Shown piece after piece: positions 9,111 to 63,391 of a DNA stretch of 64,000 nt. The notes under the pieces are model-generated. The model made no database searches. It was given only the letters and a program-made list of their open reading frames with translations, and had not been told where the DNA came from. Position numbers and translations under genes: made by a program. Source of the DNA: Octopus sinensis. Taxonomy: Eukaryota. The stretch's first letter is position 1. Each line of letters starts with the position of its first letter. The DNA lies in contig NC_042999.1 in assembly GCF_006345805.1 (NCBI RefSeq), positions 118,668,001 to 118,732,000 of the forward strand. The letters are read 5' to 3'.

Positions 9111-9489
9111 AAGCTTCGACCCCCTTGCTTTTGAGATGTTCATAACCAACGTTCTTGACTACCAACAAAACATAAACGATAATGTAACATTGCTTGAAAG
9201 TGAAATAATAAAAAAAAGAAGGGACGACAATGAGAAGCCAGACAGCAGTGACCACAACCAACTCTGACATACACATGTAGCCAATGCAATCATGTATTCT
9301 ACACAAAGTTTGACTCCATTAACCACATATATAACCAGCATTAACAGTACAAATATTAGAGAAATAAAACCTCAGATTCAAGGGATGAGCCAATGACAAT
9401 ATATATATATGAACACACACACACACACACACATACACATACACACACATAAATATACATATGTGTATGTGTGTATTTATAGGCATGAA

Positions 9490-9805
9490 TGCACGTGGCT
9501 TAGTGGTTAGGGCATCTGGCTCAAGATCATAAGGTCATGAGTTCAAGTCCCAGCAACACATTGAGTCCTTGAGCAAGACACTTTATTTCACGTTGCTCCA
9601 GTTCACTCAGCTGACAAAAATGAGTAGTACCTGTATTTCAAAAGGCTAACCTTGTCACACTGTGTCATGCTGAATCTCTCTGAAAACTATGTTAAGGGTA
9701 CATGTGTCTGTGCGGTGCTCAGCCATTTGCATGTTAATTTCATGAGCAAGCTGTTTTGTTGATCGTATCAGCTGGAACCTTTGTCATCGTAACTAACGGA
9801 GTGTC
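9490..9805 (+). mobile_element. tRNA-derived SINE (family F)
   Basis: A/B boxes (TGGCTTAGTGG, GTTCAAGTCC) plus core GTCCTTGAGCAAGACACTTTATTTCAC. Confidence 0.75.
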
Positions 9806-10179
9806 TCTTCTTCATTTATAGGCCCCAATAAATCTCCAACACCATCTATTTCTCTCTCTCTCCCTGTCTTTCTCTTTAACCCTCTCCCACCTTTCCCTCC
9901 CTCCTTGTCCCACTAAGGTAGTCAAATATTTCCTCCATAATAAGAGAACTGTTTCTTTCATTCAATTATATTCTAACCTCTTGCCTACCACACAGCCACT
10001 TCCTTTGGGTCTACCTCCTCTCTCAACTGAGATGTCTCTGTCTTGCAAGCTACTTGGCAACCCCACTGGTGCTGGTGTTATGTAAAAAACACCTGTGCTG
10101 GTATCACACAAAAGTACCCACATATGGCATTTAAATTTAAATACAAAGTAAATAAATAAGTAAACACCACAATATGCAT

Positions 10180-10214
<35 letters not shown>

Positions 10215-10274
10215 TACACACACACATACATATATATATTCTCATATATTCTTAATCTAAGATGAAGGTTGTGC

Positions 10275-10440
10275 AGGCACGTGGCTTAGTGGTTAGAGTG
10301 TTGGACTCATGATTGTAAGATTGTGGTTTTGTTTCCTGGACAAGGCAACATATGTTCTAAAGGAAAACACTTCATTTGTTATTGCTCCAGTCCATTAAGT
10401 TGGCAAAACTGAGTAATCTGGCAATTGACCAGTGTTTGTA
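10275..10440 (+). mobile_element. SINE family F, truncated
   Basis: Head GGCACGTGGCTTAGTGGTTAG and AAACACTTCATTT..TTGCTCCAGTCCA core. Confidence 0.6.
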
Positions 10441-10948
10441 AAGTATTGGCAGAATATCTGTTACTATCATTGGAAAGTCTTCTTATTAGAAAGCTGAACC
10501 TTTTCAGTTTCTTCCTTCTTAATGCATTATGTATGTATATCAATAATAGAAAGTATATGCTTATCATTAATACATTATGTAGGTATGTTATGTAAATAAT
10601 TTTACAAACATATGCATATATATACACATGCATGCATATGCACATGCATGTTTACATATGTACATATATACATACAAATATGCATATTGTGTAGCTATAT
10701 TTTTCAAACCTTATCATCTACTTTACATTAGCAAAGTGCCAATTATATCAAAGCAAAAGTCAAGCTTTTCATCTATGTTTTCATTTTTTCCTTCAGACTC
10801 GTATATGTTATTAGAAATCCATCTACTCTAATCCTTTGTTTTTGAATCAATTTCCCATTGCAATATTACTTATTTATTATTTTTTTATACTATTATCTTT
10901 CTGTAATCATTGATATTATTATACTATTTGAATGTCAGTGCCTGAGTA

Positions 10949-12163
10949 TGAGGCTGGGCAAGGTACTCAAATGGAACGTGACTAACAGAGGTTTATTTTT
11001 CAACATAGTCCCCCTTGTGATCCACACAGTTCTTCCATCAAAGTTGTGATGCTTGGATCTCATTGGTGAAGATGCTTTCCTTCTGTTGATTAAAAAATGT
11101 TATCAACAGTAGATATGACATCATCATCATTGTGATACAAGTTCCTTGCCAAGTGTTTTACCATGTTGGAGAACAAATGATAGATGAAGCCAAATCAAGA
11201 AAATAGGAAGGGTGATCAACCAGTTCAAAGAGACAGTCATGCATAGCAGCCATTGAAAGTAAGATTTTGCATGTTGGAGCATTCTTCTGATGAAACAAGA
11301 CCCTTTTCGTCAGTTTTCATGGGTATTTGTTCTTTGCAGTAATTTGTAACTGCTTCTGCAAGTTAGTATAGAACTCTCAAGTGATGGCGTGGCCCTTTTC
11401 AAGATAATCAGTGAACACAATGCCTTTTGCATCCCTCAAAAGTGAAGCCATCACATTCCCTGCAGGTGAGGATGGATATTTCCATTGCATAGATTATCTC
11501 TTTGTCTTTGGCTCAAACTGATGAAGCCAACACATATCTTGGAATAGGCAACGTTCAATGAAACTAGCTGGATCTTTTTCAAACAATGTCAAATTTTCTC
11601 ATGATGTGATCAACTTGGAGCATTTTTGATCAGGTATAGCACCCACTGAGCAGAAACCTTCATCATGCCAAGTTCATTGTGCAGAACATTCTCAACTCTC
11701 GTAATATGCTAATTAACATTGGATACTTGATTTATAGTCAATAGTCTGTCATGAATTGTCATGTGTTGAACACAATCTGTGCTTTCCTTGGTGGTGGCAG
11801 TTGCAGGATGTCCAAATTTTGGGCCATTGTCAAGACTCTCCCTCACCTACTAAATTCAGCTGTCCACTTTTGCACTGTTGATTAATTTAAACTGTCATCC
11901 CCAAATGTAGCAAACATGTCAGCATGTATGTCCTTTGGGGCTAAATCCTTTTTCTGCTAGTACTTGATAAAACCATGATGCCAAATTTTGTCCATTTTCA
12001 AGAGAAGTTCCTACTAGTTATTTTTGAAGTCTTCGTTTGAACAATTAGATGTCGGTTTACCTGGAAAGAAACAATGAAGGAGTTGAAATTAATACATGTA
12101 AGACTGCACAGCTCTAGCATCACTCTTTCATAGTCAGCCTATGAACTATTCACTGAATCCATG
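10949..12163 (-). mobile_element. Degenerate mariner, same family as 1863-2994, opposite orientation
   Basis: Reverse complement of 12110-12165 matches 1861-1920; AAGGGTCTTGTTTCATCA shared; TA flanks. Confidence 0.85.
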
Positions 12164-13685
12164 TAATGAGCAACAGCAACAAGGAGACATTATGGATATC
12201 TGAAATTGTAACAAGAAATTAAAGTTCTTTTACCAGTCAAATAAGGAGTTCAAGTACCTAGGTATAAAATTCATTTTAAAGTCTCTTAATTGAATAGATT
12301 AATATAAAAAAAAAAAATGACAAAGAGTATTGAATTATATTTTCTTGAAAGTATTTAAATGCTGCTGGCTCCCCTCCAAAAAAACTGTTGTCATTATGGG
12401 AATTAAGTGTAGGATACTTCAGTTAAATCAAACATTGATATATAATTTTCTGATTCCACAAGTCTGCATTAAATTATCTCTAAAGAATTATATATATTCA
12501 TCAGAAAGGAAATGTGAAAATAAATACAATATAAAGTAGCAAAACTTCCATTGTGATAGATTAGAGTGCTATCTAACTTCAAGTATCATAGAAATACCAA
12601 GAAAAATGTTCTAAAAAAAGACAAGACAAATCATTCTGAAGAGTTATGAATTACTATCTTGGATTGGAAGCCTATTGTTGTCACTTAAATTAGGATATTT
12701 TTATCACAATAATGCCAGTTTAGTGATTATTTTGAATTTGTAAAATATGACTTTATCAAATGTTTACTGAATGATATTGTAAACTATTTACATAAAAGAC
12801 TGATATTGCAAAGTTTTTGACAAAACTTTTGTTGCATTATGATTCTTATTTTGTTTAATTTTCATTTCTAAATTGTTAAAAATACTGCAGAAATGAGCTC
12901 CATGTGCAAAAAAATGTATTTTTATAAATAGAATGAGAATCTTGCAGTTTTATTGCCAAAAGACAGACTAAAAGATTTTATAGTTTACTAAATTGCATAC
13001 ATATTGTCAGTTTGCTATGCAACGTTTGGTTTACTCCTCCTCATAGTAAGAAAATTCTGTCTTATAAATGCTGGAGGTAAAATAGTTCAAACTCACTTGG
13101 AGGCAAAATTTGTAATGTTCTGAACTTGTCAATAGTATCTATTAATTACAATTCCTGTGCTTCTGAGTTAATCAAACAACTGAAATTAATTTTTCAATGT
13201 TGAATACTTGGATAACAAATTACAGTACCCCCCCCCCCACTCACTATGTACTGCAGAGAATTTGATATTAAGAAAAGCATTCTATGGTAAAAACAAAACG
13301 GCTTTTCTGAGCATTCAGTTCAATCCCTATAGGCCTGTAAATTATGGATTCATTTCTTTAAATTGTGATAAAGTGCATATATGTCTGAAAAGCTGTTGCT
13401 TGAGAACAATATATTTGGGTTTATTGGAATACAAAACTGATGCAACAAATATATTTGGCTGCAAAATCATTGAACATATTAAAAAAAGTAACGTGCATTT
13501 ATGCTATGAATACTGTTAAACTTCAAGAATCCAAGGTTTTTGTTTCCATGAATATTGATCATTGGAAATGAAAACAACTGGGTAAAAACTCATTTTGCTA
13601 ACAACTTATTGTTTACATTATATTATTTATCATTGTTAAATTAAAAGTTGATTGAATTCCTTTTAAACTTTCTCTTCTTTTGAAG

Positions 13686-13790
13686 CTCCGAGAACTTCGA
13701 CATGAAAATTTAAATCCATTTATTGGGTTTTTAAATGATCCAGCAAGACCTTCATTTATCACAGAATATTGTACAAGAGGAAGTTTGGAG
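13686..13790 (+). CDS. Receptor guanylyl cyclase exon (LRELRHENLNPFIGFLNDPARPSFITEYCTRGSLE)
   Basis: Polypyrimidine tract + AG, GTAAAT donor, 105 nt phase 0/0; RHENL.PFIG and EYC.RGSL motifs of the kinase-homology domain. Confidence 0.95.
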
Positions 13791-14044
13791 GTAAATGTTT
13801 TCTTCTTAGTTAAAAGTTTTCAGACAGAGTCGATATAGTTGGTTATTTGACTTCTTGTAAATACGTGGAACAAGTACTTTCTCCCTCTTTCTCCCTCACA
13901 CACACACACAGAGTCAGTGACTCACATACACACATATACTCTTACTCTTTCTCTCTCTCTCTCTCTCTCAGTTCTATTCACATATGCACAAAACTATGGG
14001 ATATTAATGAAAATTAAGATACATATGCAAAAAAACTTCTATGT

Positions 14045-14202
14045 TGTTGTAGGGAATTAGTAATAATGGTACACCCTCCCATGTGACAAATGAAATAACC
14101 TAGTCACTATAAATAAAGAGAAGTACATGATGTACCAAAGTACATAGTAGGTGATCAGAGATAGTTGTATCATTACTGGTTTTACTTTTAAGGATTATAA
14201 CA
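14045..14202 (+). repeat. 5' LTR (158 bp)
   Basis: Direct repeat of 16683-16879 with a ~40-bp gap. Confidence 0.85.
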
Positions 14203-16682
14203 GTGGCGACGTGGATTTTATCAGCTCACAAGGAGTTAACAAACTCAAAAAAGTTTTTGTTGTGAGAATTTTATGAAAAGAAAATCGTGAAATTATGGAA
14301 AATTTGTTGGCCAGTTTGCTTGAGTTGCAAAAACAGTAGCAATAGCAGCTAAAACTGCAAGAACAACAGCTGAAGCAACAACAATACCATGACCAACAAC
14401 AACAACAATTACTACTACAGCCACAAATGCTGCAATTAACAAAGTCATTAGGAAATTCAGAAAAAGTGTTCTCGCTGACTATGTTGTGAATTCCATAATA
14501 GAGTTCAAATACGATCTTGACAAAGGAGTTACCTTTGAAGCATACTACAGAAAATATTAACAAATCTTTGAGAAAGAATGTAAAGATAGAGACGACGAGA
14601 TGAAAATGTGCTTAATCTTGAGAAAACTAATGGCAACAGAACATGAAAGATACAGTAATTATGTACGCCCAAGAAAACCTTTAGACAAACTTTAATGACA
14701 CAATAGATATATTGTGTAAAATTTTCTGTGAAAAAGGCTCATTGTTCAACACATGTTGGAAATATCTGAACATAGATAAAAACAATGAGGACTACATCAC
14801 ATATGCTGGTAGAGGAAACAGGGAATGTGAGAAGTTTAAGCTGGATGAATTAATGCCAGATATGTTCAAAGGCCTGATTTTTACACAGGGGCTTATTACT
14901 GAAAAGGATGCAGAAGTTAGAACTAGAATTCTTGCAAAGCTGGAACAAAACAAGTGTCAGAAGGATATGAAAGGATAGTCAAATTAAGACACAACATACA
15001 GGAAGCTGAATGTAAAGATTGTTTCCAAGTAAAGCAAGTGTGAAATAGTCAGAACAGAGATAAGATGTTTTCAAAAAACATGACAAAAATCAGGAAATAA
15101 ACCCATGTTTTGCATGTGGAGGTATATATCTGAGGAAGGAATTGCCCTTTTAAAAAAGTGGAGTACTTTCATTGTGGAAATATAGGACATATAAAGATAC
15201 ACTGTAGAATGAAGATCATAAAACATCAGAACAAAGGAAAAAGAATGAATAGTATATCATTGAAAGAAATTGGTATCACAACGATGAGGAAGTTTGGTGA
15301 AAATCAGAAATCCAAGTGTTAAAATGCAGTTGGACATTGGTAATAACATCACCATTATAAACGAAAAAACAGGGAAATATGTTGATAAGCCAAAATTAAT
15401 TAAATCTAAAAAGGTAGTAATGGTGTTATGGGAGAAAGATTATATTTTTTTGGGTGAATTCGTGTGTAGTGTATCATTTCGAGGTCAAACGAAAAAGGCA
15501 AAGATATATGTGTTAAAAAGTTCACATAAATTATTTGGCACAGAGTGGATGGAAGTGTTCAAAGTATAGAGTACACCCATGAATGTTTTGTGTGGAAGTA
15601 TAGTCGGTTCAATCAAAGGTTCGAATGCAGCTGAGGGACTGAAAAATTGCAGTAAAACAGAGTGGAGTACTTGTATGTAAACCAAAACAAAATTAAAAAA
15701 TGCCCAGAATACAAAGTAAACATTGTTCAAAAGTAGATGTTCCACGGTCGAGACTACACATTGATTTCACTGGTCCTTTAAACAGTTCTTACTACTTAGT
15801 GGTAGTTGATAGTTTTTAGAAATGACCTGAAAATTGTGAGGGTAAAAAATCAACCTCTTCAACAGTGATAAATTTTTTACACAAATTGTTTGCAAAATTT
15901 GGTATCCCAGACAAGATAGGGTCTGACAATGGAACACAATTTGTGTCTAGCAAATTTTAAAAATTTTGTGAAATGTTTGCAGTAGAACACTTAACTGTAG
16001 TGTCCCAACAGCCCAGATCTAGTGGACACACAGAATGCTTTGTTGATACCTTCAAAAGAACCTTTAGAAAACCGAATAAGGAAGTCACAGGTGAGGTAGC
16101 TGTACAACAATTTTTAAGAGTGCACTGTGTAATACCAAATCTAAATGCACCAGTAAGTAGATCACAAGCAAAGCTGATGTTTTCAAAGTAAGTAAAATCA
16201 GTCTTTAGTAAATTGCTACCTGGCAAGAAAAGAAAAATTACCAGGGAAGACATAGCAAGACACTTTAAAGTTGGTGGAAAGGTGTATATGAGGGCATACA
16301 AGAATGGAAAGCAGAGTTGGAAGATGGCTTAATTACCAAATGCATATGTAAAATGATGTATTGGGTAAAAAGTAGAAAAGGCATATATAAGAGACACATG
16401 AACAAACTGAAAAAAAGATTTATGGAGAGTGAACCCAAGAGGTTGGAGGAACTGATGGAATGGTTGTATAATATGTTCCAAGTACCAATGCCACTGCAGG
16501 TGATTGAACCTAAGCATAGAAGTGAGTGGAAAAGAAAACATAGAGTTCCTGAAAATAGATGCCAAGTGCAAAACATGTTAAATTGTATGGAAAAAAATAG
16601 TCAAAGAAGGGAGGTGGGTAGGAATAAAAAAGATTATTGCTAAATAAAATGACACTTCCTAAGAAAAACTTAAACGGGGAGA

Positions 16683-16879
16683 TGTTATAGCTAATTAATA
16701 ATGGCACACCCTCCCATGTGACAAATGGCATAACCTAGTCACTATAAGTAAAGAGAAATATGTGAAATACCAGAGTATGTAGTAAGCAGTTAGAGATAGT
16801 CATGTCTTTACTGTTTTACTAAGTATACTGTATACTAAGGTGGGTGCTATGTCAATCTATCATTTTAAGGATTATAACA
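16683..16879 (+). repeat. 3' LTR (197 bp)
   Basis: TGTTATAG...TTAAGGATTATAACA; shares CACCCTCCCATGTGACAAATG with the 5' LTR. Confidence 0.85.
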
Positions 16880-17232
16880 TATTTAAATGAGCAAAACTAA
16901 TATATATAGATGTTAATATTCATCAATAATATAAACTCATAAATAAAAATATGTGCAATATGTCTGTGCGTATTGTGTGTGTTTTGTATGAGTGGTGAGA
17001 GTGTTGTGTGGATATATATATATATATATATATAGATAGATAGATAGATAGATATGAGTGTGTGCATGTAAAATCAAGTATATTCATGCACTTCAAAATA
17101 ATGTAAAATTCTTTGGACCAAAGTAGTATGTGTGTGTGTGTGTGTGTGTGTGTAAGTTTGTATTTGTGTGTGCAAGTATTCTTATTTTGTAAGTTTGTTG
17201 ACCCCATACATTAATGACTTTGTTATCTGGAT

Positions 17233-17450
17233 AGGCGGTGAGCTGGCAGAAACGTTAGCATGCTGGGCGAAATGCGTAGCTGTATTTTGTCTGCCGTTAC
17301 GTTCTGAGTTCAAATTCCGCCGAGGTCGACTTTGTCTTTCATCCTTTTGGGGTCGATAAATTAAGTACCAGTTATGCACTGGGGTCGATGTAATCGACTT
17401 AATCCGTTTGTCCCCTCTGTGTTTAGCCCCTTGTGGGTAGTAAAGAAATA
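17233..17450 (+). mobile_element. SINE family C, full length
   Basis: tRNA-like head; 13-bp direct repeat TATCTGGATAGGC at 17224-17236 and 17451-17463. Confidence 0.85.
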
Positions 17451-19227
17451 TATCTGGATAGGCATTAAGAAAATCTAGACTGCAAAAGAAAGTCTGTTTA
17501 AATTTAATTATTTACTAATGAAGCTGACATATATTTATTTTCAAAATAAATGGAAAGAGTCAGAGTTGTAGTAACATGCTATCTTATGCAACAATCAACC
17601 TGCTTGTATGGATTGAACTTACAAGGTCTTAACAGCTCAGCTGTCAACAACTATTAATATGAAACAATAAAATAAACAGATTGCCCACTCTTTTAAATGA
17701 ATTAAATTTTGGTATGTTCTTTGCATTTTTGCTTTACATTTCCCAATACATAGGCATTTTCTGACTATAAGATGTTTTAAAAACTTTTTTATTCATATGA
17801 ATTATATTCTTATTTATTCTGGATTACCTTGTTTCATTTGATGGCTAGTTGTATCTTGAAGCATCCTAAACTCATATATCCTTCGATGTTTATATCTTAT
17901 CATGCAGTGATAATTATAATAAACATCAGTATGTCTATTCTAGACTGCAAAGATAATGCTTTTAGGTAACATTCCGTTTAAATTGCCTTTCAATAATTCA
18001 GTGAAATAGCTATCATCATGCAAACAAGTTAGATATACATCACTGATAATAAACTGAATTTAACAATTCAGGACACTGGGCAAATATAACAATGAAATGC
18101 TCTTAAGCTTCTTGAGGGGAACTAATGTAATTTGTTCAATAAGACAAGTAATAATATCATCTCGGTTTATAATGTTAAAAATCACTAGCTTACTTTCTTT
18201 TGTAAAAGTTCACCAATATTTGCAATATTCTTCACTGAGGTCATTTTAATTCACCAAACTATATAATACTATTTTGCAATGGCAATTTCCAAGAACAGTA
18301 AATAAAGTATAGTATAACAGTACATTCTTCACTTAGTAGTCATAAAATAAGATTTTATTTCATTTGATTGATCAGGTAAGGTAGTTTTTGTAATTTAATT
18401 ATCAATTAGCATATCAAACTCTTGACTTTTGTATTGCTTATTCTCATCTATTACAATGAGCTATTTCATCTGAAAAGTGCACAATTTATTAAATTCTACA
18501 ATAGATTTCTATAGCTTTTACAAAATTTCTCCCCTATTTTTGCAACATTTATGATAATCTATAATTTTCACTCTATAACATTGCAAATATATTACTTCAA
18601 GCATTGTCCATAACAGTACTGACATATTGATTGGTATTAATTCAGTTTGGAGATCAACAAATTCAATAATATTTTAGATACACTTCAGCTACTCTTAAAG
18701 TTTTCCACTTATTGTACTATTATTTCAAAGATAACTGTAATATTGATACAGAGACATAGTATGCTGAATACTAGAATTGTGTAAACTTCAGCAGTCTTTG
18801 ACAAATGTAATTTTTTAATGGTACTATGTATCCATAAATAGAGCAGAAACTGAAATAAATAGAAATAGTTGAAAAGTATATTGGTTGCACACTTTTAATA
18901 TACATCTGTACTATTATATAGGTAAACAGATAAAATAAAGGGGTATGTCTTGTTTTTATGTTGAAAAAAAATCTAATGTCTCATCTTTGCATTAATTCCA
19001 AGTATATGAATGCTACATCTACTATGAGTACAAAGTAAACCTTTTAATATCCTTTGATCTAACTGGGATAAAAATAAAGGCACAGAGTTTCTAGCAAATA
19101 CTTTTTTTAATATTGAGCTTATCAATGTTTGATATTTTCATACAAATTCATGTGTCAGCTTTGTGGTGGGATGTCAAGTGACTGGTGTATTTGCAATACT
19201 GCTGTATACTAACTATAATTGCATCTG

Positions 19228-28416: not shown

Positions 28417-28703
28417 ATCACATGACCGACCAGGCTATCAGATGTTGCTACACATCGCTGGTCACCATGCGCTTTGCATTGTTTTAGCCTTCAAATGATG
28501 CCACCCCGTTGGTTAACAGAAGAAAGAGTGAGAGAAAGTTGCAGCAAAAGAGTACAGCAGGAATCGCCACCAACCCCTGCCGGAGCCTCGTGGAGCTTTA
28601 GGTGTTTTCGCTCAATAAACTCTCACAACACCCGGTCTGGGAATCGAAACCACGATCCTACGCCCGCTAGTCTACTGCCCTAACCACTGGGCCATTGCGC
28701 CTC

Positions 28704-28706
<3 letters not shown>
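28411..28706 (-). mobile_element. tRNA-derived SINE (family B variant)
   Basis: Head GTGGAGGCGCAATGGCCCAGTGGTTAG and GTTTCGATTCCC B box; tail shared with 35843-35962. Confidence 0.8.
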
Positions 28707-44653: not shown

Positions 44654-46089
44654 CAGGGTGCTCTTGCTAAATTTGATAGCTTGCATAAAAGGAAAAAAAC
44701 AACAACACGATATCCTATTCAAAAATAAAATTTAAAAAAAAGCAAAAATTATCAAATATATTATAACTCAGAGATAAAAGTTTACTCAAAGTAGCCACCT
44801 TTGGCTTCTACCATGGGTTCAAAATAGCTCCAGAAACTGGTGAATGCATTTTCCTTTGTCACTGAGTAGATCTTCAAACACCTCCTTGATCTTAGCCACC
44901 AGTTTGACCTTAGTGTTGCTCACAGAACTGTTAGAGTCTTTCTCAACCACACTCCAGTCATATTCCTCAATGGGATTACAATTGGGAAAATAAGTTATAA
45001 AAATTCTCCAGCAATCACGTTTCACTTTTTCTGGAGGTATGGCAAGGAGCTGAATCCTGCTACTACACATCTGGCCTTCCAGCAAATAACCCTCTCCAAC
45101 TAAGCTTTGATCACAGTCTCCAGCAGCTCCACATATCTGTCTGAATTAAGCCTAAGGCCCTTCTCAAAGATATGGGGTGGCATGATATCTCTCTCACTGG
45201 AGATATACCCAAAGACCATTACAATTTGTAGGGAATTTAGTTTTTATGATACACAAAACATCACAGATTGTTGGCAAGCTTTTACAGTGGTCACAGATCA
45301 TTGAGTAGCAGTCATGATGTTGGCATTTTGATACCTGGTGTAGCCCATCATGATACAGTTACCTTGTTTGCAATATTCAGATTTCTTCAAGTCCTCCATG
45401 TCAGCTCAGTTTTTCTCAACTGCAACTTTAATCTTTATGCTCTCCAATGCCATTGACTAGTGGAGGCACATGGCCTGAGCAGTGGTCGAGGGATCGTGAG
45501 TTTGAATCTCAGACCGGGCGATGCGTATGTTTATGAGCGAAACGCCTAAGCTCCATGCGGCTCCAGCAGAAGGTAATGGCGAACTTCTGCTGACTCTTTC
45601 ACCACAACTTTCTCTCACTCTTTCCTCCTGCATCTTGCAGCTCACCTGCGATGGACTGGCGTCCCATCCAGGTGGGAAACCTATACGCCAAAGAAACTGG
45701 GAAACCGGCCCCTATGAGTAAGGCATGGCTCAAGAAGGTACAAAAGAAAAAAAAAAATGCCATTGCCTGTTCACTCAACAAATCAAGCTGTTCCTGAGAA
45801 AAAAGGAGACACAAGAAAATTACTGCAAAGCTCCATGATAGTGTTGTCAGACATGGCATGCAGACCATCATATAACTTGTTTTATTCTTCTCTTCCATTT
45901 TATTTTGACATGTACATTGTATTTTTATTTTTCTTCCATTTTACGAATTCAGTATGCACATGTGCATTGCATGCAAGTACTTCTTTATATCAAAACTGTT
46001 TACAGATCACACAAACCTGCATTCATGAGGAGTGCTTCGTGCTCCAATGGTTGCGAAAGAAAATCAACAGATATAACCCAAATACCCTG
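44654..46089 (-). mobile_element. Degenerate Tc1/maT-like DNA transposon, split by a SINE
   Basis: CAGGGTG ... TACCCTG termini, TA at the right flank; minus-strand QDSA..HTS and PNCNPIEEYDWSVVE remnants. Confidence 0.7.
45456..45755 (+). mobile_element. SINE family B (core resembles MetaSINE/V-type domain)
   Basis: 10-bp TSD AATGCCATTG (45446-55, 45756-65); tRNA head; CTGCGATGGACTGGCGTCCCATCCAGG core; A-rich tail. Confidence 0.85.
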
Positions 46090-55289: not shown

Positions 55290-55349
55290 TATATATATGT
55301 GTGTGTGTACAGGCTATATTAAATCTCTGAGCAAGAGATAACCAGATTA

Positions 55350-55789
55350 TTCAAGATCATTGACAGTTTGTTGCTGGAAAAAGCATATAGTATTTTGTGA
55401 GTGGAATGAGTTTCCATTACTAGCTGGTAATTAACACATGCTGAGGACGGGTAACCACCCAGAAACTTGAGTCCATGTGTATCATATAAGGCTAGAGATG
55501 GGAGCAATGACCTCCCCATGCAAATACTAATCGAACACAGAATTTGTGTCATTAGCCAGCTGGAAGAGATGTCTTACTGGAACTATAAACACCAGTAGCA
55601 CCGTCCTGTATAGGACGCTACACTTGGTTGGCAATTACATGTTGCGATTCCGTGTTGCTACTGTTTATATCTTGCTCAAAGATTTAATATTGCTTATTTC
55701 CCCTTTTTCAAGATCAGTGACAGTTTGTCATTGGAAAAGGCATATAGTATTTTGCAAGTGAAATGAGTTTTCATCACTAGCTGGTGATT
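55350..55789 (+). repeat. Retrozyme-like tandem repeat: unit 1 (55350-55706) plus first 83 bp of unit 2
   Basis: TTCAAGATCA.TGACAGTTTG recurs at 55350 and 55707 (period 357); unit 2 continues at 61756 after the LINE insertions. Confidence 0.8.
55434..55480 (+). ncRNA. Compact type I hammerhead ribozyme
   Basis: ACACATG-CUGAGGA-CGGGT/ACCCA-GAAAC-TTGA-GUC-CATGTGT; perfect 7-bp stem I; cleavage predicted after 55473. Confidence 0.85.
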
Positions 55790-57721
55790 GTCTCTTGATG
55801 TGAGTTACGGCTTTTTATTTGAATTACTGAATTGTTGAATTACAGAATTGGTGATTTGATGTACAGTTGAATTATTGAATTGTTGAATATTGTGTTGCAT
55901 TTGTGAAATTGTTGAAGATTTTGTTTGGCTTCCCCATTTATGGATGAAGCAGTGAATGACAGAAATATGAATTCATAGGTCCAGACAGGCAGTTATGTTG
56001 TGGGGACAGGCAAAAGCCTGACAACGGAGCTACTGCAGATACAGCAACTGGAAGTGAAAGACATAGACAAGAAATTTAATAACCTGTTGAAGAAGCAAAG
56101 AGGCTGCCTAAGACTGACACTCCCAAAGAAGTAGCAGAAGAATCGGAAAGAAAAATAATTACACTGAATATAGGGACAAGAAAAGTAGAAATAGCAGGCG
56201 TTGAAGAGATAGAGGAATGTTTAAAGGAAGTAAAGGAAGTAACGACATTCTATAACAGAGTATGAAAGTTTCGAATGGTGGAGGTGTGCTTCGTTACTGA
56301 GAATGAAGCAAAGAAGTACTTACTCCACTGTAGTCTTGAAATCAGCATAGTGGGCACTCTTTTTTGTTCCTTCTTGAGCCATGCCTGGCTCATAAGGGCC
56401 GGTTTCCTTGGCGTATAGGTTCCCCATCTGGACAGGACGCCGGTCCGTCGCAGGTGAGCTGCAAGGTGCAGGAGGAAAGAGTGAGAGAAAGTTGTGGCGA
56501 AAGAGTCAGCAGAAGTTCACCATTACCTTCTGCCAGAGCCGCATGGAGCTTAGGTGTTTCGCTCATAAACACACACATCGCCTGGTCTGAGATTCGAACC
56601 CATGATCTCTTGACAGCGAGTGCGCTGCTCTAACCACTAGGCCATGTGCCTCCAGTGGGCACTCTTACCTACTTACTGTGACAGATGCACAGCCAAAGTA
56701 AGGATAGGGAGAATGCCACCCAAATTTAACGAGGAGTAGCTTGTGGCAGCCATCCTCTACAATACAGAGGAGAAAGCAGAGATACTGAAAATGTCAAAGA
56801 CAGCGGAGGTCAACTGGTGGGGTTATGGCCTTGAAGTGGTGGTACATATCAGCCTACCTGACCTTCACAAAATTGTGGAAGAGATAATCCTACCCAACGA
56901 AACCAGATTGAGAATCATGTTGGAGGGTAGACCGCCAATATGCTTCGAATGTGGAGTAAGGGGGCACATAAAGGCAAAGTGTTCCCAGAAACACGAACAG
57001 GAGGTGGTGGAGGAGGAGTGCCAGGAAGAAGTAAATGCAATAACAGAGAAAGAAGCAGAGTTCACTGAGGTAGAGAGGAGAGAAAATAGTGAATCCCCTC
57101 CAAAAAAGAAAAGAAAAGCAGAGAAAAAGGAAAAAAGAAAAAATGAAGAAATAGGAGATCGAACACAGGAACCGGAGCCTTCAACAAGTAAGGAAGAGGA
57201 GAGACGGAAGGAACTGGAAGACGAGCAACAGAGCGAAATAGAAATGCCAGCACTAATGACAGAAAATGAAGAGAGAAGACCACCTAAAGGAAAACACGAA
57301 AGAGTGACGGTGGTGCATGAGAAAAGTGTAGAAATAGAAAAATGAATTGCAAGAATGAAAGGCGTAATAAGAGTGAGAATGGCAGAAGGAGGCGTAAAAG
57401 CAGTGTTGTTACAGGATGAAAGGGCAGCTAGACTGAGGGAGGTGTTTGGAAGTAGAGGGGAGAGCACACCGTTCCAATTTTGATATGATAATTACCACCT
57501 CTGGTAGAATTTGAAGAGGTAATGACTTTTTGTTATAAATACAATATAAGATGAATTGTAAATATGGTAAAATGGAACTTTCTTCTTTGGGGAGTAGGAA
57601 GCCATTTCATTACCATAATTTTTCATACCTCATAATTCATTTGTAAATCATTCTATGTACCCAACGTTTGTCCTTGTAATGTCCTTTCTATATAAGGTTT
57701 TATGCCTATAATAATGAGAAA
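55790..57721 (+). mobile_element. Tx1/L1-like element 1, ORF1 only (HAL1-like), degenerate
   Basis: Starts GTCTC after the target motif; ORF 56743-57345 has CFECGVRGHIKAKC zinc knuckle and E/K-rich tail; no ORF2; TGTAATGTCC near the 3' end as in element 2. Confidence 0.75.
56362..56653 (-). mobile_element. SINE family B inserted in LINE ORF1
   Basis: 13-bp TSD AGTGGGCACTCTT (56349-61, 56654-66); reverse complement of 45456-45755. Confidence 0.9.
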
Positions 57722-57732
57722 AGCTGATGATT

Positions 57733-60700
57733 GTCTCCACCTTTTTGATTGCCCTCATATGTGAATTCGTTTTGGGATTGTTTTATGTTATTTTACAAAT
57801 TGCTGAATTGAGTTATTTTTTAATTCGAACTGTTGTTACCTTGTTAACTGTAATTTTCGCCCTGCGGGGAGAAAATACTGTTTAAAAAGTATTTTGTTTG
57901 AGAAACTTCTGTGAAAAATTAATTTTTGCCCTGTCCTGGGCGTTGTGTTGTTTTTTTTTGCCATTATGGCAAATACTGAAAATATGAATATCAATTTGGA
58001 TTCTCAAAAGGAATTCCCTGCTATGGGAAAAGAAAGTGATTCGTCTAAGGATAACAAAGTAAAAACCAGTTTTTTATTTGCTGCAGTCGGTGGGAAGGAA
58101 ATAGGAATGATTTTTAAAATGGAACAACTGTTCAGTTACTGCAATATGGTGAAGCAAGTCGACGGTGAGACCAAATTAATTCCGCTGCCAGAAACAGTGG
58201 TGGAAATAAATGCCAGAACTGTGATATATAAAATATATAGTACAAAGGAAGAAAAAAATATGGAAGCGAAGAATGAGATAGTGGAGAGGTACTTGGCACC
58301 TATCTGGAACAAAATATGCTATGTTAGCTGAGGAATACGTAGTGCAACTGTGGAAGTACAGTTCCAGTCGGCCAACATAGCAAAAGAAATAGCTACCAGA
58401 ACACTGAAAAATGAGGAGATACTGCTGCTACCCACCTATCTGGGTCACTTGACGGCCAAAATTGTAGTGGAGGAAATACCTGTAGGCTACGAACTGTTGT
58501 GGGTAGCAACGGCAATTATATTCAATGCTGAGAATGAGGTAGACATCTTGCAGATGTTGAGAAAGGACACCCAAAATTGGAAAGGTCAGACACTGCAGAT
58601 GGTGGTACAACTAAACTTTGGAGAAGTTGCCCGATAGGATTTTGTAGGGGAGGGGCACATGATACGTGTGTCGGTGGAAGGACATAGGCCCAGATGCTTC
58701 AAATGTGGGCAGATCGTACTTAGATAGGGTATTCGTTAGACAAGATAGGAATACTTTTAGTCGTCCACATTTTTTTGTTGTGCCTTACACGGATCACAAA
58801 TTTGTGACGTGTGAGGTGCATCTAGATAAATGTCATAGACAGGGTCCTGGGTATGGAAGATGAACAAGTCTATCGTGACTTGTGAAGCCTTTTGTACCTG
58901 GATTAAGGAATTAGTACAGAGGGCATTATGTGGCACCATCATTAATAAAAGATGGTGGCATGCCCTCAAAAGAGCCATCCATTTAAAGTTCATTAGATTT
59001 AGCAAACAGCTAAGTTTAGATAGGACTAGAATAGAGGGTGAATTAGTTAAGAACCTAGACAAGGCTGTGGAATCTGGTTCTGCATCTGGAGTGCTAGCGG
59101 CGAGAGCGGTCTTGCATCGTCACCTCAATGCCAAACATGAAGGTTGCAGTCAGAGCTAAGCTACGTGCAGGAAACGAGAAGGTATCAACGTTGCTGGATG
59201 GGCATGCCGAGTGGAGTGTCAGAGAGGTAAAAATGCCTCCATTAAGTCTTTAACTGATGAACAGGGGTGCAAGATCTATGGACAGGAGGAGATGCAGAAG
59301 GTCTTCTACCAGTATTTCACACGGTTGTTTGGGGAAAGTGGTTTGCTTGAGCACGGGGAAGTCTTAAAAAACTTCCTAGCTGGTGGACCGCGACTTTCGG
59401 CAAGTGAGGTGGGGTGCTGTGAAGGACCAATCTCTCCCATAGAGGTTAAAGAGGTGTTGGCCGAGTCTGCCAGGGAAAGTCGCCAGAGCTGGATAGTCGG
59501 CCCTATGAGTTTTACCATAGTATGCCGGCTTTGTTCGAGGATATACTGGCCAGCGTCTATACAAACTGGCAACAGAATGGGAGAATTCCCACTGCGGTGA
59601 GCCAGGGAGTGGTGACGCTGATCCAGAAAGACCTAAGCAAGGGGGATAGTATTAGTAACTTCCGGCCCATAACTCTACTTAATGTAGAGTTAAAAATTTT
59701 GGCCAATGTGCTGTCGTGGAGAAACTTGTCCGGAAAGCACAGACATGGGCAATACTCGGCAGGTCGATCCAGGACAATCTTCACCTTATCCGCTACACAT
59801 TAGACAGGGTGGGTAAATTAGCCAGCAAAGGTGGAACAATGGTCCATTTAGACCATTTGATAGGGTTGACCCTCAGTACCTGGTGGTGGTTCTTGAAGAG
59901 GCTGGGTTGGGCCCGGTCTTCCGTGGGTGGATCTCCACTATGTACAGAGGCATCAAGCCCACAGTCCAGATAAACGGTTACCTGATGGAGCCATTTTCTA
60001 TCAAACACTCAGTTCGTCAAGGGTGCCCCTTGTCTTCACTTCTGTATGTGTTGGCTCTTGAGCCATTGCTGTGGAAGTTGGAGAGGTTGGGAGGTAACCC
60101 TGATGAAATCTGAGGTGGTAAGTCTGTTTCTACTTAGGTGGACGACGTCACCTTCATCATGTCCAACAAAGCACAGCTACCTCATGTAGAAGATGCTATC
60201 AGAGGATATGAGGCGGTGGCTGGAGCAAAAGTTAACAAGGACAAGTCGATCGGCTTGTGCCTCGGCATCTGAAGGAACAAGTCGATATTGTCCGGTGTCA
60301 TGGGTCACTGGACATATGGTCCTGTTAACTCCTGCTTGGAGTTTGGTTTGGACTGGTCTCCCAGACGAAGAAGAATTGGAGCAAGGTGGCAAACAAGGTG
60401 GAGGCACTAGCCCTGACTTGGTCCGGAAGACCGCTGTCATTGAAAGGAAGGGTGGAGGTGGTGCAGGTGTTTATTGCATCAGTAATCACCTACCACCTGA
60501 CCGTTTTCCCTTGCCCCGATTCATGGATAAGCAAGTTGGAATGACTCCTTTTCTGCTTTTTGGGGAAGTGGGGGAAAGCCACTTGTGAGGCACCCCGTTT
60601 GCTGCCAGGAACCATTAAAGGGTGGGTTGGGGATGCCTTGGTTAATGATACACAGACATGTGTTGAGGCTGAGACATCTCTGGTGCCACCTGGAAGGTGA

Positions 60701-61735
60701 TAAGGTGTGGAGCCTGCTGGCAGAGGGATTCTTCCCGCGACTGACCACTATGGTAAGATTTAAGCCCGGTTTTATAAAAAGACGAAATCTGATTGAATGG
60801 CAAAAGGAGTGCCGACAGGCACTCATGCTTATCCACAAGGCAGGCAAAGCCAGCAGTGGAAATACTATCTCGAGGTTCTATAGAGGGCTGGTGGAGTTTA
60901 GAAATGATGTCGTCTTAGGAGGGGCTCTGGAGTTCGATGAGAACCAACCCGCCAACCTGTTTAGTAGGACTGTTAGACCGAGGTATTTGAATAATAAGCA
61001 AAAATCCCTGGCCTGACAGTGCTATAGAAATGCTCTACCTGTTCACATAAAGTTATCCAGGCATGAAGTTTCAGTGTCACCAACTTGCCCAAGATGCGTG
61101 CTGGACGACGAAACCGTCCAGCACGCTTTTGTACAATGTCGGGAGCTTTCGAGCTTGATGGTTTTCGTGGAACATGAGTTGTTGCATCTGGGAAGAGTAT
61201 GGCTATCAGCTGGATCTATAATAAAGATGGTACCACCAGCCAGACTCTCAAAGGAAGGTGAGGCATGTTCTCTCTGTACGGTTGCAGTACTGAAAGAATG
61301 CATATGGAAACCAAGAATGGAAGGTGTCGCGACAGGATCCTTCATCTCTGACCCCGGTTTGCTAAATTACTTCAGGTACCATCTGAAGAGCAGGATGGGG
61401 CTGGAGAGGAAAACCCTGTCATGTAGGGTATATGAGCAAAGATGGAAGGATGTGATGAGAAAGGTGGATGTGAGTAACTCAGCTTAATCATTGATGAAAG
61501 GAAAATAGATAGTCGCTGGGCCTTACAGGCTGCCAGGTGAATCTGCCCAATTTCATTTTAAATTTAAGTAAAAAAAAGGTGGTATCAAAAAGGAAAAAGA
61601 ACAAAATCAGTTAATTGTAAATAAATGAATGTCATCTGTAAATATACTCATCTGAACTCAGATATCATTTTTGTGTGTTTGTAATGTCCTGTAATGTCCC
61701 TCTCTGTGTTTGATTGTATAATCATAGTAAAAATA
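57733..61735 (+). mobile_element. Tx1/L1-clade LINE element 2 (ORF1 + internally deleted ORF2), degenerate
   Basis: ORF1 LLPTYLG..EGHRPRCFKCGQ; APE end YLDRVFV..DHKFV; GPGY.KMN; RT NFRPITLLN, GRSIQDN, SVRQGCPLS, VDDVT; C-terminal CPRC..ETVQHAFVQC. Confidence 0.9.
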
Positions 61736-61928
61736 TTCATTACTAGGTGGTGATTAACACACGCTGAGGATGGGTAAACATCCAGAAACTCGAGTCCATA
61801 TGTATCATGTAAGGCTAGAGATGGGAGTGATGACCTCCCCTCGCAAATATTAGTTGGACACAGAATGTGTGTCATTAGTCAGCTGGAAGAGATATCTTCC
61901 TGGAGCAATAAACGTCAGTAGCACCATC

Positions 61929-61932
<4 letters not shown>
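61736..61932 (+). repeat. TSD plus remainder of retrozyme-like unit 2
   Basis: Aligns with 55413-55610; ends at (AT)n. Confidence 0.85.
61757..61803 (+). ncRNA. Compact type I hammerhead ribozyme (second copy)
   Basis: ACACACG-CUGAGGA-TGGGT/ATCCA-GAAAC-TCGA-GUC-CATATGT; palindromic TCGA loop; stem I has 2 mismatches. Confidence 0.7.
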
Positions 61933-61966
<34 letters not shown>

Positions 61967-62330: not shown

Positions 62331-63234
62331 ATTATTATTTCAAAGTCCTTACTCTAATAAGAATTTTCTTGAAGATTTCATGATTCGATTAGACAACAAT
62401 CAGAAACACATTTAGCACAGCTTCTTTACAGGACTATTATCAATTGAAAGTAACGCAACCTTTTAGCTTATTTCATTGTCATAACACAGTCCATTATTGC
62501 TATCTCTAGTTATATAGCAGGTCAATGTTGAAGCTTTGTGAGAGAGAATTGGAATTGATGTAATGCAATTTGTTCCCTCCGAGAACTGATCATATAATAA
62601 TATTAATAATAACTTTTGACTGGTATGAGACAGATTGTTGATAAGAGATAAGAGAGAAGTGAGATGCCAACTTGGTCAGTATTATCATTAAATCTTGAAC
62701 ATGTGCTGAATTTTTTATTAGAGCAAATGTACTTCTGTATTCTGTGTTGATACCAATATAGTAAATAGTAATTAGTTTATTTAATTTTTTAAATTAATTC
62801 CTTCGATCTCACAGAAATACTTATGAAAGAATCATTCACAATCAAGGAAAATAATTAACTTGGTAGACATTTTTAATTTATCTAAGAGGTTTATTGTAGT
62901 AAATAAAGAATGAAGCCATTCTAAATGACAGTCGAAATGATGCCTGTCTTATTCACTGATGACTTACAATCACAGCAAAAGTCAACAACAATGTCACTTG
63001 TGATCAATAACATTAACTCAAAACTCATAATGATGGTAATGTCTCATTGTTTTAAAACTGATTGTGATGCCAAAAATGATACTGGTGATGAGAATGGTGA
63101 AGATCACAACAATGATGATGATATTAATGATGACTTTTCCTTGTCTGGAGACTAATATATAAATAAGTATGCTATAAGTGAAACTGTATTATTAATGATG
63201 TAGAAATAAAATGAAATATCGTTTGTTTTTCCAG

Positions 63235-63391
63235 GGCCTACGTTACATTCAAAGTTGTCCACTGAGGTATCATGGTAATTTGAAGTCTCGGAATTGTGTT
63301 ATTGATAGCCGCTGGGTGTTAAAGATCACAGATTATGGTATCCCCGGCATGCTAGAAGGTGGGAAGGCTGACAGGAATCTCACAGCAGAAG
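63235..63391 (+). CDS. Receptor guanylyl cyclase exon (GLRYIQSCPLRYHGNLKSRNCVIDSRWVLKITDYGIPGMLEGGKADRNLTAE+1 nt)
   Basis: tttttccag acceptor phase 0; HGNLKSRNC and LKITDYG pseudokinase motifs; 3' end placed at the AG|GCAAGT GC donor (less certain than the 5' end). Confidence 0.9.

Follow-up and report, generated by a model that had tools for sequence, protein, structure and literature searches.

Introduction

Site-specific long interspersed nuclear elements (LINEs) offer a view of how DNA is read by the endonucleases of retrotransposons and serve as models in work on targeted gene insertion; with every new target, the rules of recognition become better defined. The R1 and R2 elements of arthropod ribosomal DNA are expressed by co-transcription with their target. 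Read-through target sequence helps the precise priming of R1, and a self-cleaving ribozyme resembling that of hepatitis delta virus frees the R2 RNA from the co-transcript. LINEs of the Tx1 clade are known from small nuclear RNA and 5S rRNA genes, microsatellites, satellites, DNA transposons and long terminal repeat (LTR) elements (PMC4494074). Here we analyse a stretch of 64,000 nucleotides of Octopus sinensis (NC_042999.1), called the window below and numbered from its first letter, in which two LINE-related elements, E1 and E2, lie head to tail in a repeat that bears predicted hammerhead ribozymes. We consider it likely, with good confidence, that an Octopus LINE lineage of the L1/Tx1 type integrates sequence-specifically beside the hammerhead of this repeat.

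Tx1-clade LINEs are also found inside transposons: Tx1L in Tx1D of Xenopus, and Tx1-Mar, together with SINEU-3, in Mariner-N4_AMi of crocodilians, where tandem insertions of Tx1-Mar and SINEU-3 that sandwich a duplication were read as sequential insertions (PMC4494074). The octopus locus resembles these systems. A LINE probably of the L1 group, with an apurinic endonuclease-like (APE) domain and a first open reading frame (ORF1) that may be of the RNA recognition motif (RRM)/CCHC type, is inserted at a single defined position of a mobile element present in many copies, and the duplications are in the 14–20-bp range; tandem copies sandwich the duplication, and a non-autonomous partner (E1 here, SINEU there) has the same target. 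It differs from them by the target, a hammerhead-bearing repeat apparently of the Penelope-like or retrozyme type, and by a site that abuts the ribozyme. Strict site specificity and a multicopy target recall R1 and R2. R2, however, has a restriction-like endonuclease, a single ORF and a 5′ ribozyme of its own, whereas the octopus ribozyme belongs to the target and lies 3′ of the LINE, where its use by the LINE is only proposed. In the literature searched, no LINE was found to be described as aiming at a repeat of the hammerhead, retrozyme or Penelope type. The process appears to be site-specific target-primed reverse transcription of the known Tx1 kind, acting on an apparently unreported class of target.

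Retrozymes, and the hammerheads in the pseudo-LTRs (pLTRs) of Penelope-like elements (PLEs), come as tandem units of 170–400 bp with a type-I hammerhead and a GC content below 45% (PMC7229834; PMC4209133; bioRxiv 10.64898/2026.07.22.740005). Animal non-LTR retrozymes are now argued to be non-autonomous PLEs, and PLE insertions are characterised by partial tandems, an inverted 5′ copy and microsatellite flanks (PMC8557442).

Sequences analysed

The window was compared with locus L004 of O. sinensis and locus L005 of O. bimaculoides. Both were reached through two annotated octopus proteins that matched an ORF1 profile in a protein collection, that is, by ORF1 protein homology alone. Their flanks were not known at retrieval, hence there was no selection for flanking sequence. 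The sample of insertion sites comprises these three loci and five events (E1, E2, the L004 copy and two L005 copies). The same protein collection contained no close relative of ORF2, the best match being 47% identical and encoded on a 3-kb contig without flanks; exact look-ups of a 200-aa ORF of the window and of the O. bimaculoides protein P0123 returned nothing on record.

Repeat copies of different species were linked with a three-sequence nhmmer profile. Between species, blastn did not link the repeat subfamilies and aligned only the ORF2 region of the LINEs. Covariation was tested on four hammerhead regions (two from the window, two from O. sinensis), with 500 shuffles and slid controls.

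The insertion site in the window

The repeat has a period of 357 bp and is present as 1.75 units, with two hammerheads, a GC content of 40% and no supported ORF in the window. The 20-mer TTCATYACTAGSTGGTGATT has three matches in the window (55770-89, 61736-55 and 55413-32), against 0.04 expected. The first two are identical at 18 of 20 positions and bracket 5.9 kb. When the flanks are joined (55789 to 61756), the product aligns to unit 1 (55347-55612) with 230 of 266 positions identical (86%) and no gap across the junction. The empty site is restored by this operation, and the 5.9 kb are therefore an insertion into unit 2. An earlier note on this DNA, made from the letters alone, had claimed both the 20-bp duplication around some 6 kb and the restoration of unit 2, and both claims stand. 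It had also placed stem I of the hammerhead 1 nt after the duplication. The adjacency is real: stem I begins 2 nt past the duplication, with one unpaired A between.

Between E1 and E2 lies a remnant of the target (57722-32), followed by the true 5′ end of E2 (57733-37). The sequence found there, AGCTGATGATT, matches the left junction for 5 further bases, and the resulting duplication of E1, AGCTGRTGATTGTCTC, is 16 bp long, with two matches in the window against 0.07 expected. The third partial target copy of the earlier note thus exists, with its extent corrected to 16 bp (57722-37). The duplication of E1 includes the first 5 nt of E2, and E2 would therefore have been inserted before E1. In the simplest reading of these junctions, E2 came first and generated the 20-bp duplication, and E1 then entered the left target copy. 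The reverse order was also considered and is excluded: the right-hand duplication of E2 contains TTCATTACT, which is not in the 3′ end of E1. A GTCTC terminus shared by the two elements, with which both had been said to begin, was likewise rejected, since GTCTC is most simply read as part of the 16-bp duplication of E1, copied from the 5′ end of E2; it is probably no common 5′ terminus. The 5′ starts of the O. sinensis (L004) and O. bimaculoides (L005) copies differ from those of the window elements.

The same site in two other loci

The LINE of L004 is 5.5 kb long (9747-15272), with an intact ORF1 of 506 aa and an ORF2 broken by one frameshift. It lies between perfect 18-bp duplications, TTTCATCGCTACCTGGTG (9729-46 and 15273-90), within 1.3 units of a diverged member of the window repeat family, and the hammerhead begins 5 nt beyond the duplication. 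L005 contains two different E2-like LINEs, head to tail, with a perfect 19-bp sequence, TTTTTCAAACAGCTGGTCG, upstream (9764-82) and again between them (15393-411); the same two nick positions were used twice. The upstream flank of L005 is homologous to the window repeat up to AGCTGGT (local score of 24 versus 9.9±2.0, reached by none of 500 shuffles), and an inverted fragment of the repeat is found just upstream (nhmmer E 3e-10).

At all three loci, the sense strand of the LINE is that of the ribozyme. Bottom-strand nicks map to the start of a T-run (±1 nt) and top-strand nicks after GGTG(ATT), within ±3 nt, giving duplications of 20 bp (E2), 16 bp (E1), 18 bp (L004) and 19 bp (L005). The 3′ ends of the LINEs are homologous and finish with ...ATAATAAARAAAA. 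The duplications match within each locus (18/18, 19/19 and 18/20) and differ between loci, as do the repeat subfamilies. They therefore correspond to independent insertions into targets that had already diverged. Same position and same orientation in homologous repeats are thus observed for five events at three loci. If the window is left aside, having been picked because it shows the feature, all three remaining events fall at the site, a result that is qualitatively strong and no census.

These two loci support what the earlier note had proposed, namely that the lineage targets the hammerhead repeat. Its E2-like relatives sit at the homologous position, in the same orientation and between perfect duplications, and their flanks are neither random nor microsatellite. 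Nor is the repeat a part of the LINE: unit 1 of the window and a second repeat copy of L004 (39371-39967) are free of LINEs, and the duplications differ between loci.

Table 1. Features of the window around the insertion site; hammerheads are predicted.
Feature	Position	Strand	Basis or remark
Repeat unit 1, uninterrupted	55346-55702	+	Direct repeat D3, spacing 357; nhmmer E 2e-113
Repeat unit 2, left part up to the insertion point	55703-55789	+	Direct repeat, alignment to unit 1, nhmmer
Repeat unit 2, right part, ending in (TA)n microsatellite	61756-61935	+	Direct repeat, alignment to unit 1, nhmmer
Inverted partial copy of the repeat tail	55313-55345	-	Left edge of the repeat, adjoins (TA)n(TG)n
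Empty target site in unit 1, TCCATTACTAGCTGGTAATT	55413-55432	+	2 mismatches to the duplicated 20-mer
Type-I hammerhead, unit 1	55434-55480	+	Descriptor scan, covariation
Type-I hammerhead, unit 2	61757-61803	+	Core motif, covariation
E2, dead L1/Tx1-type LINE	57733-61735	+	Translations, nucleotide identity to the L004 copy, tblastn
20-bp target-site duplication of E2, left copy, TTCATCACTAGCTGGTGATT	55770-55789	+
20-bp target-site duplication of E2, right copy, TTCATTACTAGGTGGTGATT	61736-61755	+
E1, ORF1-only LINE relative	55795-57721	+	Translations, ORF1 alignment, 3′-end alignment
16-bp duplication of E1, left copy, AGCTGGTGATTGTCTC	55779-55794	+	11 target nt, then 5 nt copied from the start of E2
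16-bp duplication of E1, right copy, AGCTGATGATTGTCTC	57722-57737	+	15/16 versus 55779-94
tRNA-derived SINE in E1 ORF1, 295 bp	56360-56654	-	Sequence read; other copies

The predicted hammerhead

The unit 1 motif reads ACACAUG CUGAGGA CGGGUAACCACCCA GAAAC UUGA GUC^CAUGUGU, with predicted cleavage after 55473. That of unit 2, ACACACG CUGAGGA UGGGUAAACAUCCA GAAAC UCGA GUC^CAUAUGU, has an intact core and two mismatches in stem I; its predicted cleavage, after 61796, falls 61 nt beyond the 3′ end of E2. CUGAGGA, GAAA and GUC are present in both window copies, which therefore have all core nucleotides, in type-I order. In the four copies tested for covariation, the hammerhead structure accounts for pairing in 86.5% of cells, against 10–54% in the slid controls, and five pairs are altered on both sides, a number reached by 0 of 500 shuffles. 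Stem I occurs as ACACAUG/CAUGUGU, CGCCCG/CGAGCG and CCACACG/CGUGUG, and in stem II U-A exchanges with G-C and G-C with A-U between copies. Stem III has only 2 bp, and stem and loop are self-complementary in all copies (ACUUGAGU, ACUCGAGU, ACUGGU and ACCUAGGU), a mark of the minimal, dimer-acting hammerheads of PLEs and amphibian retrozymes (PMC7229834). The identification rests on the core motif and the covariation, and the ribozyme is a predicted one.

The target repeat

Like retrozymes and PLEs, the repeat is a non-coding tandem with a unit in the 170–400-bp range, a type-I hammerhead in each unit, a low GC content (40%) and a minimal stem III whose palindromic loop would imply action as a dimer. 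The circular monomer is predicted to fold modestly more stably than shuffles (z -2.4). The repeat is set between (TG)n/(TA)n microsatellites on both sides, (TA)n(TG)n to the left and (TA)n to the right. At its left edge, the segment 55313-55345 is inverted relative to 55661-55693 (a 33-nt inverted repeat, 88% complementary, also found as a minus-strand nhmmer match) and, to judge from its sequence, is a Penelope-like 5′ inverted fragment of the repeat. Such an inverted fragment is present in L004 too (9494-9553). Partial tandem, adjacent inverted 5′ fragment and microsatellite target, the arrangement described for PLEs (PMC8557442), are found together in the window; in L004, the inverted fragment and the embedding in (TA)n belong to different repeat copies. 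The repeat would accordingly match an animal non-LTR retrozyme, that is, a non-autonomous derivative of PLEs. It departs from retrozymes by having only 1.3–1.75 units per locus, and the likeness is one of sequence; an autonomous PLE whose pLTR matches the repeat was not identified, PLE sequences not having been examined.

The second repeat copy of L004 (39371-39967, detected by nhmmer) has 1.7 units, belongs to another subfamily and is embedded in (TA)n. Its target region, TTCATCGAGAAGCGATG, is devoid of CTGGTG. The core of its hammerhead, UUGAUAA (C3U and G8A), probably leaves it without activity; stem I is preserved, as is the palindrome of stem III, ACCUAGGU.

The elements E2 and E1

The ORF2 of the L004 copy matches Exo_endo_phos (6.5e-12), RVT_1 (2.6e-32) and zf-RVT (4.1e-10), that is, an APE endonuclease, a reverse transcriptase (RT) and a C-terminal zinc-binding domain; the frame of its APE domain is open. 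In a comparison with solved structures, which is no phylogeny, the best relative of ORF2 was human L1 ORF2p, collinear from APE to RT (E 7e-12 and 8e-42), followed by R2 proteins (2e-25). By these matches the lineage probably belongs to the L1 group, and Tx1 is a likely label within it; an RT outside Tx1/L1, which would have spoken against the earlier note, was not found, the RT being L1-like. The CCHC knuckle of ORF1 is just under the Pfam cut-off (20.0 versus 20.8 bits for L004, 17.2 for E1), and none of the Pfam RRM models matched ORF1. An arrangement of RRM and CCHC in ORF1 is consistent with Tx1 (PMC5203782), and site specificity, too, is typical of that subgroup (PMC4494074). In O. vulgaris, 13 recently active L1-Tx1 families are known from a RepeatMasker-type annotation (PMC13282606).

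E2 is a decayed member of this lineage. After the 5′ untranslated region (UTR), ORF1 extends from 57966 to ~58715, and an ORF2 remnant (~58716-61487) contains the C-terminal end of APE, a linker, RT and zf-RVT, with many frameshifts and stops; the 3′ UTR ends with ...ATAGTAAAAATA. The zinc knuckle of ORF1 is directly followed by the last ~40 residues of the APE endonuclease. An internal deletion of 1.37 kb, which maps to 10741-12110 of L004 (blastn), has removed the C-terminal half of ORF1 and ~190 aa of the endonuclease. Owing to decay, the RVT_1 and zf-RVT matches are weak, below the Pfam cut-offs, and of APE only the C-terminal end is present. Compared to the near-intact L004 copy, E2 is 82% identical at the nucleotide level over 2874 bp; at the protein level (tblastn), identity is 63–80% for ORF2 and only 47% for ORF1, which points to a much faster evolution of ORF1 than of ORF2 in this lineage.

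A hairpin in the 5′ UTR, UUUUCGCCCUNNGGGGNAGAAAAU, is common to all four E2-like LINEs (window 57853-57876; L004 ~9877-9900; L005 ~9900-9923 and ~15543-15566) and not found in E1. Its predicted fold is more stable than those of shuffles (z -2.2 to -4.2), and the hairpin could be a promoter or an RNA-protein recognition element.

E1 consists of a 5′ UTR, a degraded ORF1 (~55940-57483) and a 3′ UTR. Its ORF1 has an RRM-like region, a CCHC knuckle and a charged tail, and is 43–52% identical to the O. bimaculoides proteins P0123 and P0124. With the ORF1 of E2 it shares 29% identity, including LLPTY..TAK and EG..P.CF.CG. The two ORF1s had been called homologous yet divergent, and the elements separate families, in the earlier note, which is borne out by this figure. 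Its description of two LINEs in tandem holds for E2. E1 is not a full LINE: it is an ORF1-only element, in which tblastn found no ORF2 remnant. The last ~90 nt of its 3′ UTR are homologous to the 3′ ends of the E2 type. As E1 shares this terminal sequence, it was presumably mobilised in trans, by an ORF2 of E2-like or E1-family origin. E1 resembles HAL1 (half-L1) elements, ORF1-only L1 derivatives of mammals, in having a 5′ UTR, ORF1 and a LINE 3′ end without ORF2. E1-type ORF1s exist elsewhere, as P0123 and P0124; E1 itself is one copy, and may represent a family or a single deletion.

Discussion

Ordinary site-specific target-primed reverse transcription is the best explanation of these observations. 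A LINE would enter a ~20-bp site, TTTCATNNCTASCTGGTG, immediately 5′ of the ribozyme and on the ribozyme sense strand. The APE endonuclease, the presumed source of specificity, would nick the bottom strand at the start of the T-run, where reverse transcription would be primed, and the top strand would be cut 14–20 nt downstream, yielding a target-site duplication of 16–20 bp. With the recognised sequence inside the duplicated stretch, a usable target would be left on either side of each insertion, and later arrivals could line up head to tail, separated by copies of the target. The same course was described for Tx1-Mar and SINEU-3 in the crocodilian Mariner (PMC4494074). In the window, E2 would have entered first and E1 into the left target copy, both decaying afterwards. 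E1 was inserted beside the 5′ end of E2, and recognition would therefore not depend on the ribozyme sequence downstream.

Three other explanations have to be weighed. Adjacent LINE fragments could have arisen by chance, through nested insertion or unequal crossing-over, the short repeats being coincidental. Old, decayed and transposon-rich octopus sequence does contain many nested elements, an example being the short interspersed nuclear element (SINE) in E1. Yet chance would give only 0.04 matches to the 20-mer and 0.07 to the 16-mer, far fewer than observed, joining the flanks exactly restores the empty site, the same arrangement recurs at L004 and L005, and E1 and E2, being different families, cannot be a pair made by unequal crossing-over. 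Above-chance repeats, restored site and recurrence effectively refute this explanation, to which we attach next to no probability. It is very unlikely, in our view, that the LINE and the hammerhead repeat move as one unit, by 5′ or 3′ transduction or as a retrozyme with a LINE as cargo, so that the flanks are merely inherited. Such a unit would account for LINE and ribozyme being on the same strand every time, and it would fit with the similar divergence of the non-coding LINE parts and the repeat flanks between loci, where blastn aligns the ORF2 region only. However, inherited duplications should differ within a locus as well, whereas those observed match within each locus and differ at many positions between loci. 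LINE-free units exist (window unit 1 and L004 39371-39967), different LINE families (E1, E2 and the second L005 copy) occupy one site, and no outer duplication surrounds LINE plus repeat, the repeats ending instead in microsatellites and in a Penelope-like inverted fragment.

A hot spot without sequence recognition is the least improbable of the three. A loose preference of the LINE endonuclease, for instance for a T-run, for the structure of the DNA around the ribozyme palindrome or for open, transcribed chromatin, would suffice, and an abundant repeat would then collect insertions. Hammerhead repeats indeed appear common, as the 44 kb of L004 contain two unrelated copies; target sequences vary from locus to locus, and the nick position varies by 1–3 nt, or 9 nt for E1. 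A loose preference would nevertheless scatter insertions over the unit and the genome, whereas at three loci they keep to a single homologous position of the ~357-bp unit, to within ±3 nt and in one orientation, and both nick positions of L005 served for two insertions. We therefore regard a mere hot spot as unlikely, and retain sequence-specific integration beside the hammerhead.

Several points weigh against this conclusion. The sample is small, three loci and five events, and the window locus was chosen because of the feature itself; the downstream flank of L005 is hidden by an assembly gap. Nick positions wander by 1–3 nt between loci, and the first-strand nick of E1 is 9 nt off. Several positions vary among the three occupied targets (CTAGCTGGTGATT, CTACCTGGTGGTT and ACAGCTGGTCG), which leaves the recognised bases undefined. 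Placement in the Tx1 clade, rather than in L1 broadly, is only likely. As to the ribozyme, Rfam reported no hammerhead or other family, either at its gathering threshold on the whole window and three loci or at E≤10 on 6.7 kb and on a 111-nt slice. The 10.1-11.1 pair, canonically G-C, is replaced by U-A or C.A in the two window copies, and O. sinensis copies of L004 have core substitutions, UUGACGA (C3U) and UUGAUAA (C3U and G8A). The 2-bp stem III and the non-canonical 10.1-11.1 pair are the likely reasons for the Rfam miss, which we do not take as a disproof because core and covariation are present. Finally, distant relatives (L006, and L008 of Argonauta) are not in hammerhead repeats; the specificity therefore belongs to the Octopus families and not to the whole lineage.

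A further proposal concerns the ribozyme itself. The LINE might borrow the transcript of the repeat and use the target hammerhead to cut read-through RNA 61 nt past its own 3′ end. Where the repeat has several units, the hammerhead of the unit upstream would also cut, ~315 nt ahead of the 5′ end of the LINE. The resulting 3′ tail, 20 nt of target plus 41 nt of ribozyme, would be exactly complementary to the nicked bottom strand and would align the primer on the last base of the LINE. The 3′ end of the primer (...GATGAAA-3′) cannot pair with the A-rich LINE end and pairs perfectly with read-through target RNA. The ribozyme is never disrupted by the insertion, and LINE and ribozyme are always on the same strand, both of which fit such a use. 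In an extreme version, a LINE-containing monomer with 5′-OH and cyclic-phosphate ends could be circularised like retrozyme RNA. The AATAAA-like 3′ end of the LINE makes ordinary polyadenylation at least possible, and we consider use of the ribozyme by the LINE to be rather improbable.

If sequence-specific integration holds, one retroelement would specialise on another class, the APE-dependent machinery landing in a Penelope-derived retrozyme, and the target itself would be a mobile, ribozyme-bearing RNA element. The Octopus system, with its near-intact L004 copy, could then serve to ask whether a LINE can borrow the promoter and ribozyme of its host element, and whether specialisation tracks the diversification of repeat subfamilies. 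It would also explain head-to-tail pile-ups of LINEs in cephalopod assemblies, which repeat annotation would otherwise mis-merge.

Distant relatives

LINEs with ~35% identity in ORF2 form near-perfect head-to-tail arrays in two European Nucleotide Archive (ENA) assemblies, on contigs named as circular. The array of L002/L003 (ERZ21867824, ctg88761c) has a period of 6821 bp and 99.9% identity, that of L007 (ERZ25071366, ctg14421c) a period of 6508 bp and 99.3% identity. One ORF2 cluster counts 732 member sequences. No hammerhead target was found in L002, L003, L006, L007 or L008. L006, from these assemblies, is a solitary copy of the same distant family, with a 14-bp duplication, GCAGCTGTAGTAAG (2668-2681 and 9163-9176), and no hammerhead nearby; its flank, AGCTGGTAGAG...GCAGCTGTAG, is loosely reminiscent of AGCTGGTG in the octopus target.

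L008 (Argonauta hians, BAAFZT010000021.1) has two related LINEs in tandem (9761-12790 and 13400-18860), 43–63% identical in amino acids to the L004 copy. Both LINEs have the 3′ end GGCTAATAAAGAAA, after which come (ATCT)n and a ~170-bp sequence common to the two; this points to another kind of target in this octopod, perhaps a microsatellite. Tandem stacking and the choice of a target look like habits of the lineage, and the hammerhead repeat like the Octopus families' own target.

Other features of the locus

The SINE in ORF1 of E1 is flanked by a 10-bp duplication, GTGGGCACTC (56350-59 and 56655-64). Further copies, 78–90% identical, are present in the window (45485-45745 and 28519-28705) and in L004 (41740-41932). 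ARAGORN found no tRNA in the 54–64 kb region, the head of the SINE being too diverged.

Just left of the repeat, between (CA)n and (TA)n(TG)n, lies a perfect 32-nt inverted repeat with a 28-nt loop (55198-55229/55258-55289). It does not match the hammerhead-repeat profile, and could represent a further small element or belong to a complex insertion of the Penelope type. To the right, ~63211-63390 encodes a protein-kinase-like segment (PK_Tyr_Ser-Thr, 3e-4, below the cut-off), likely a host exon; the repeat and its LINEs are therefore probably intronic or close to a gene.

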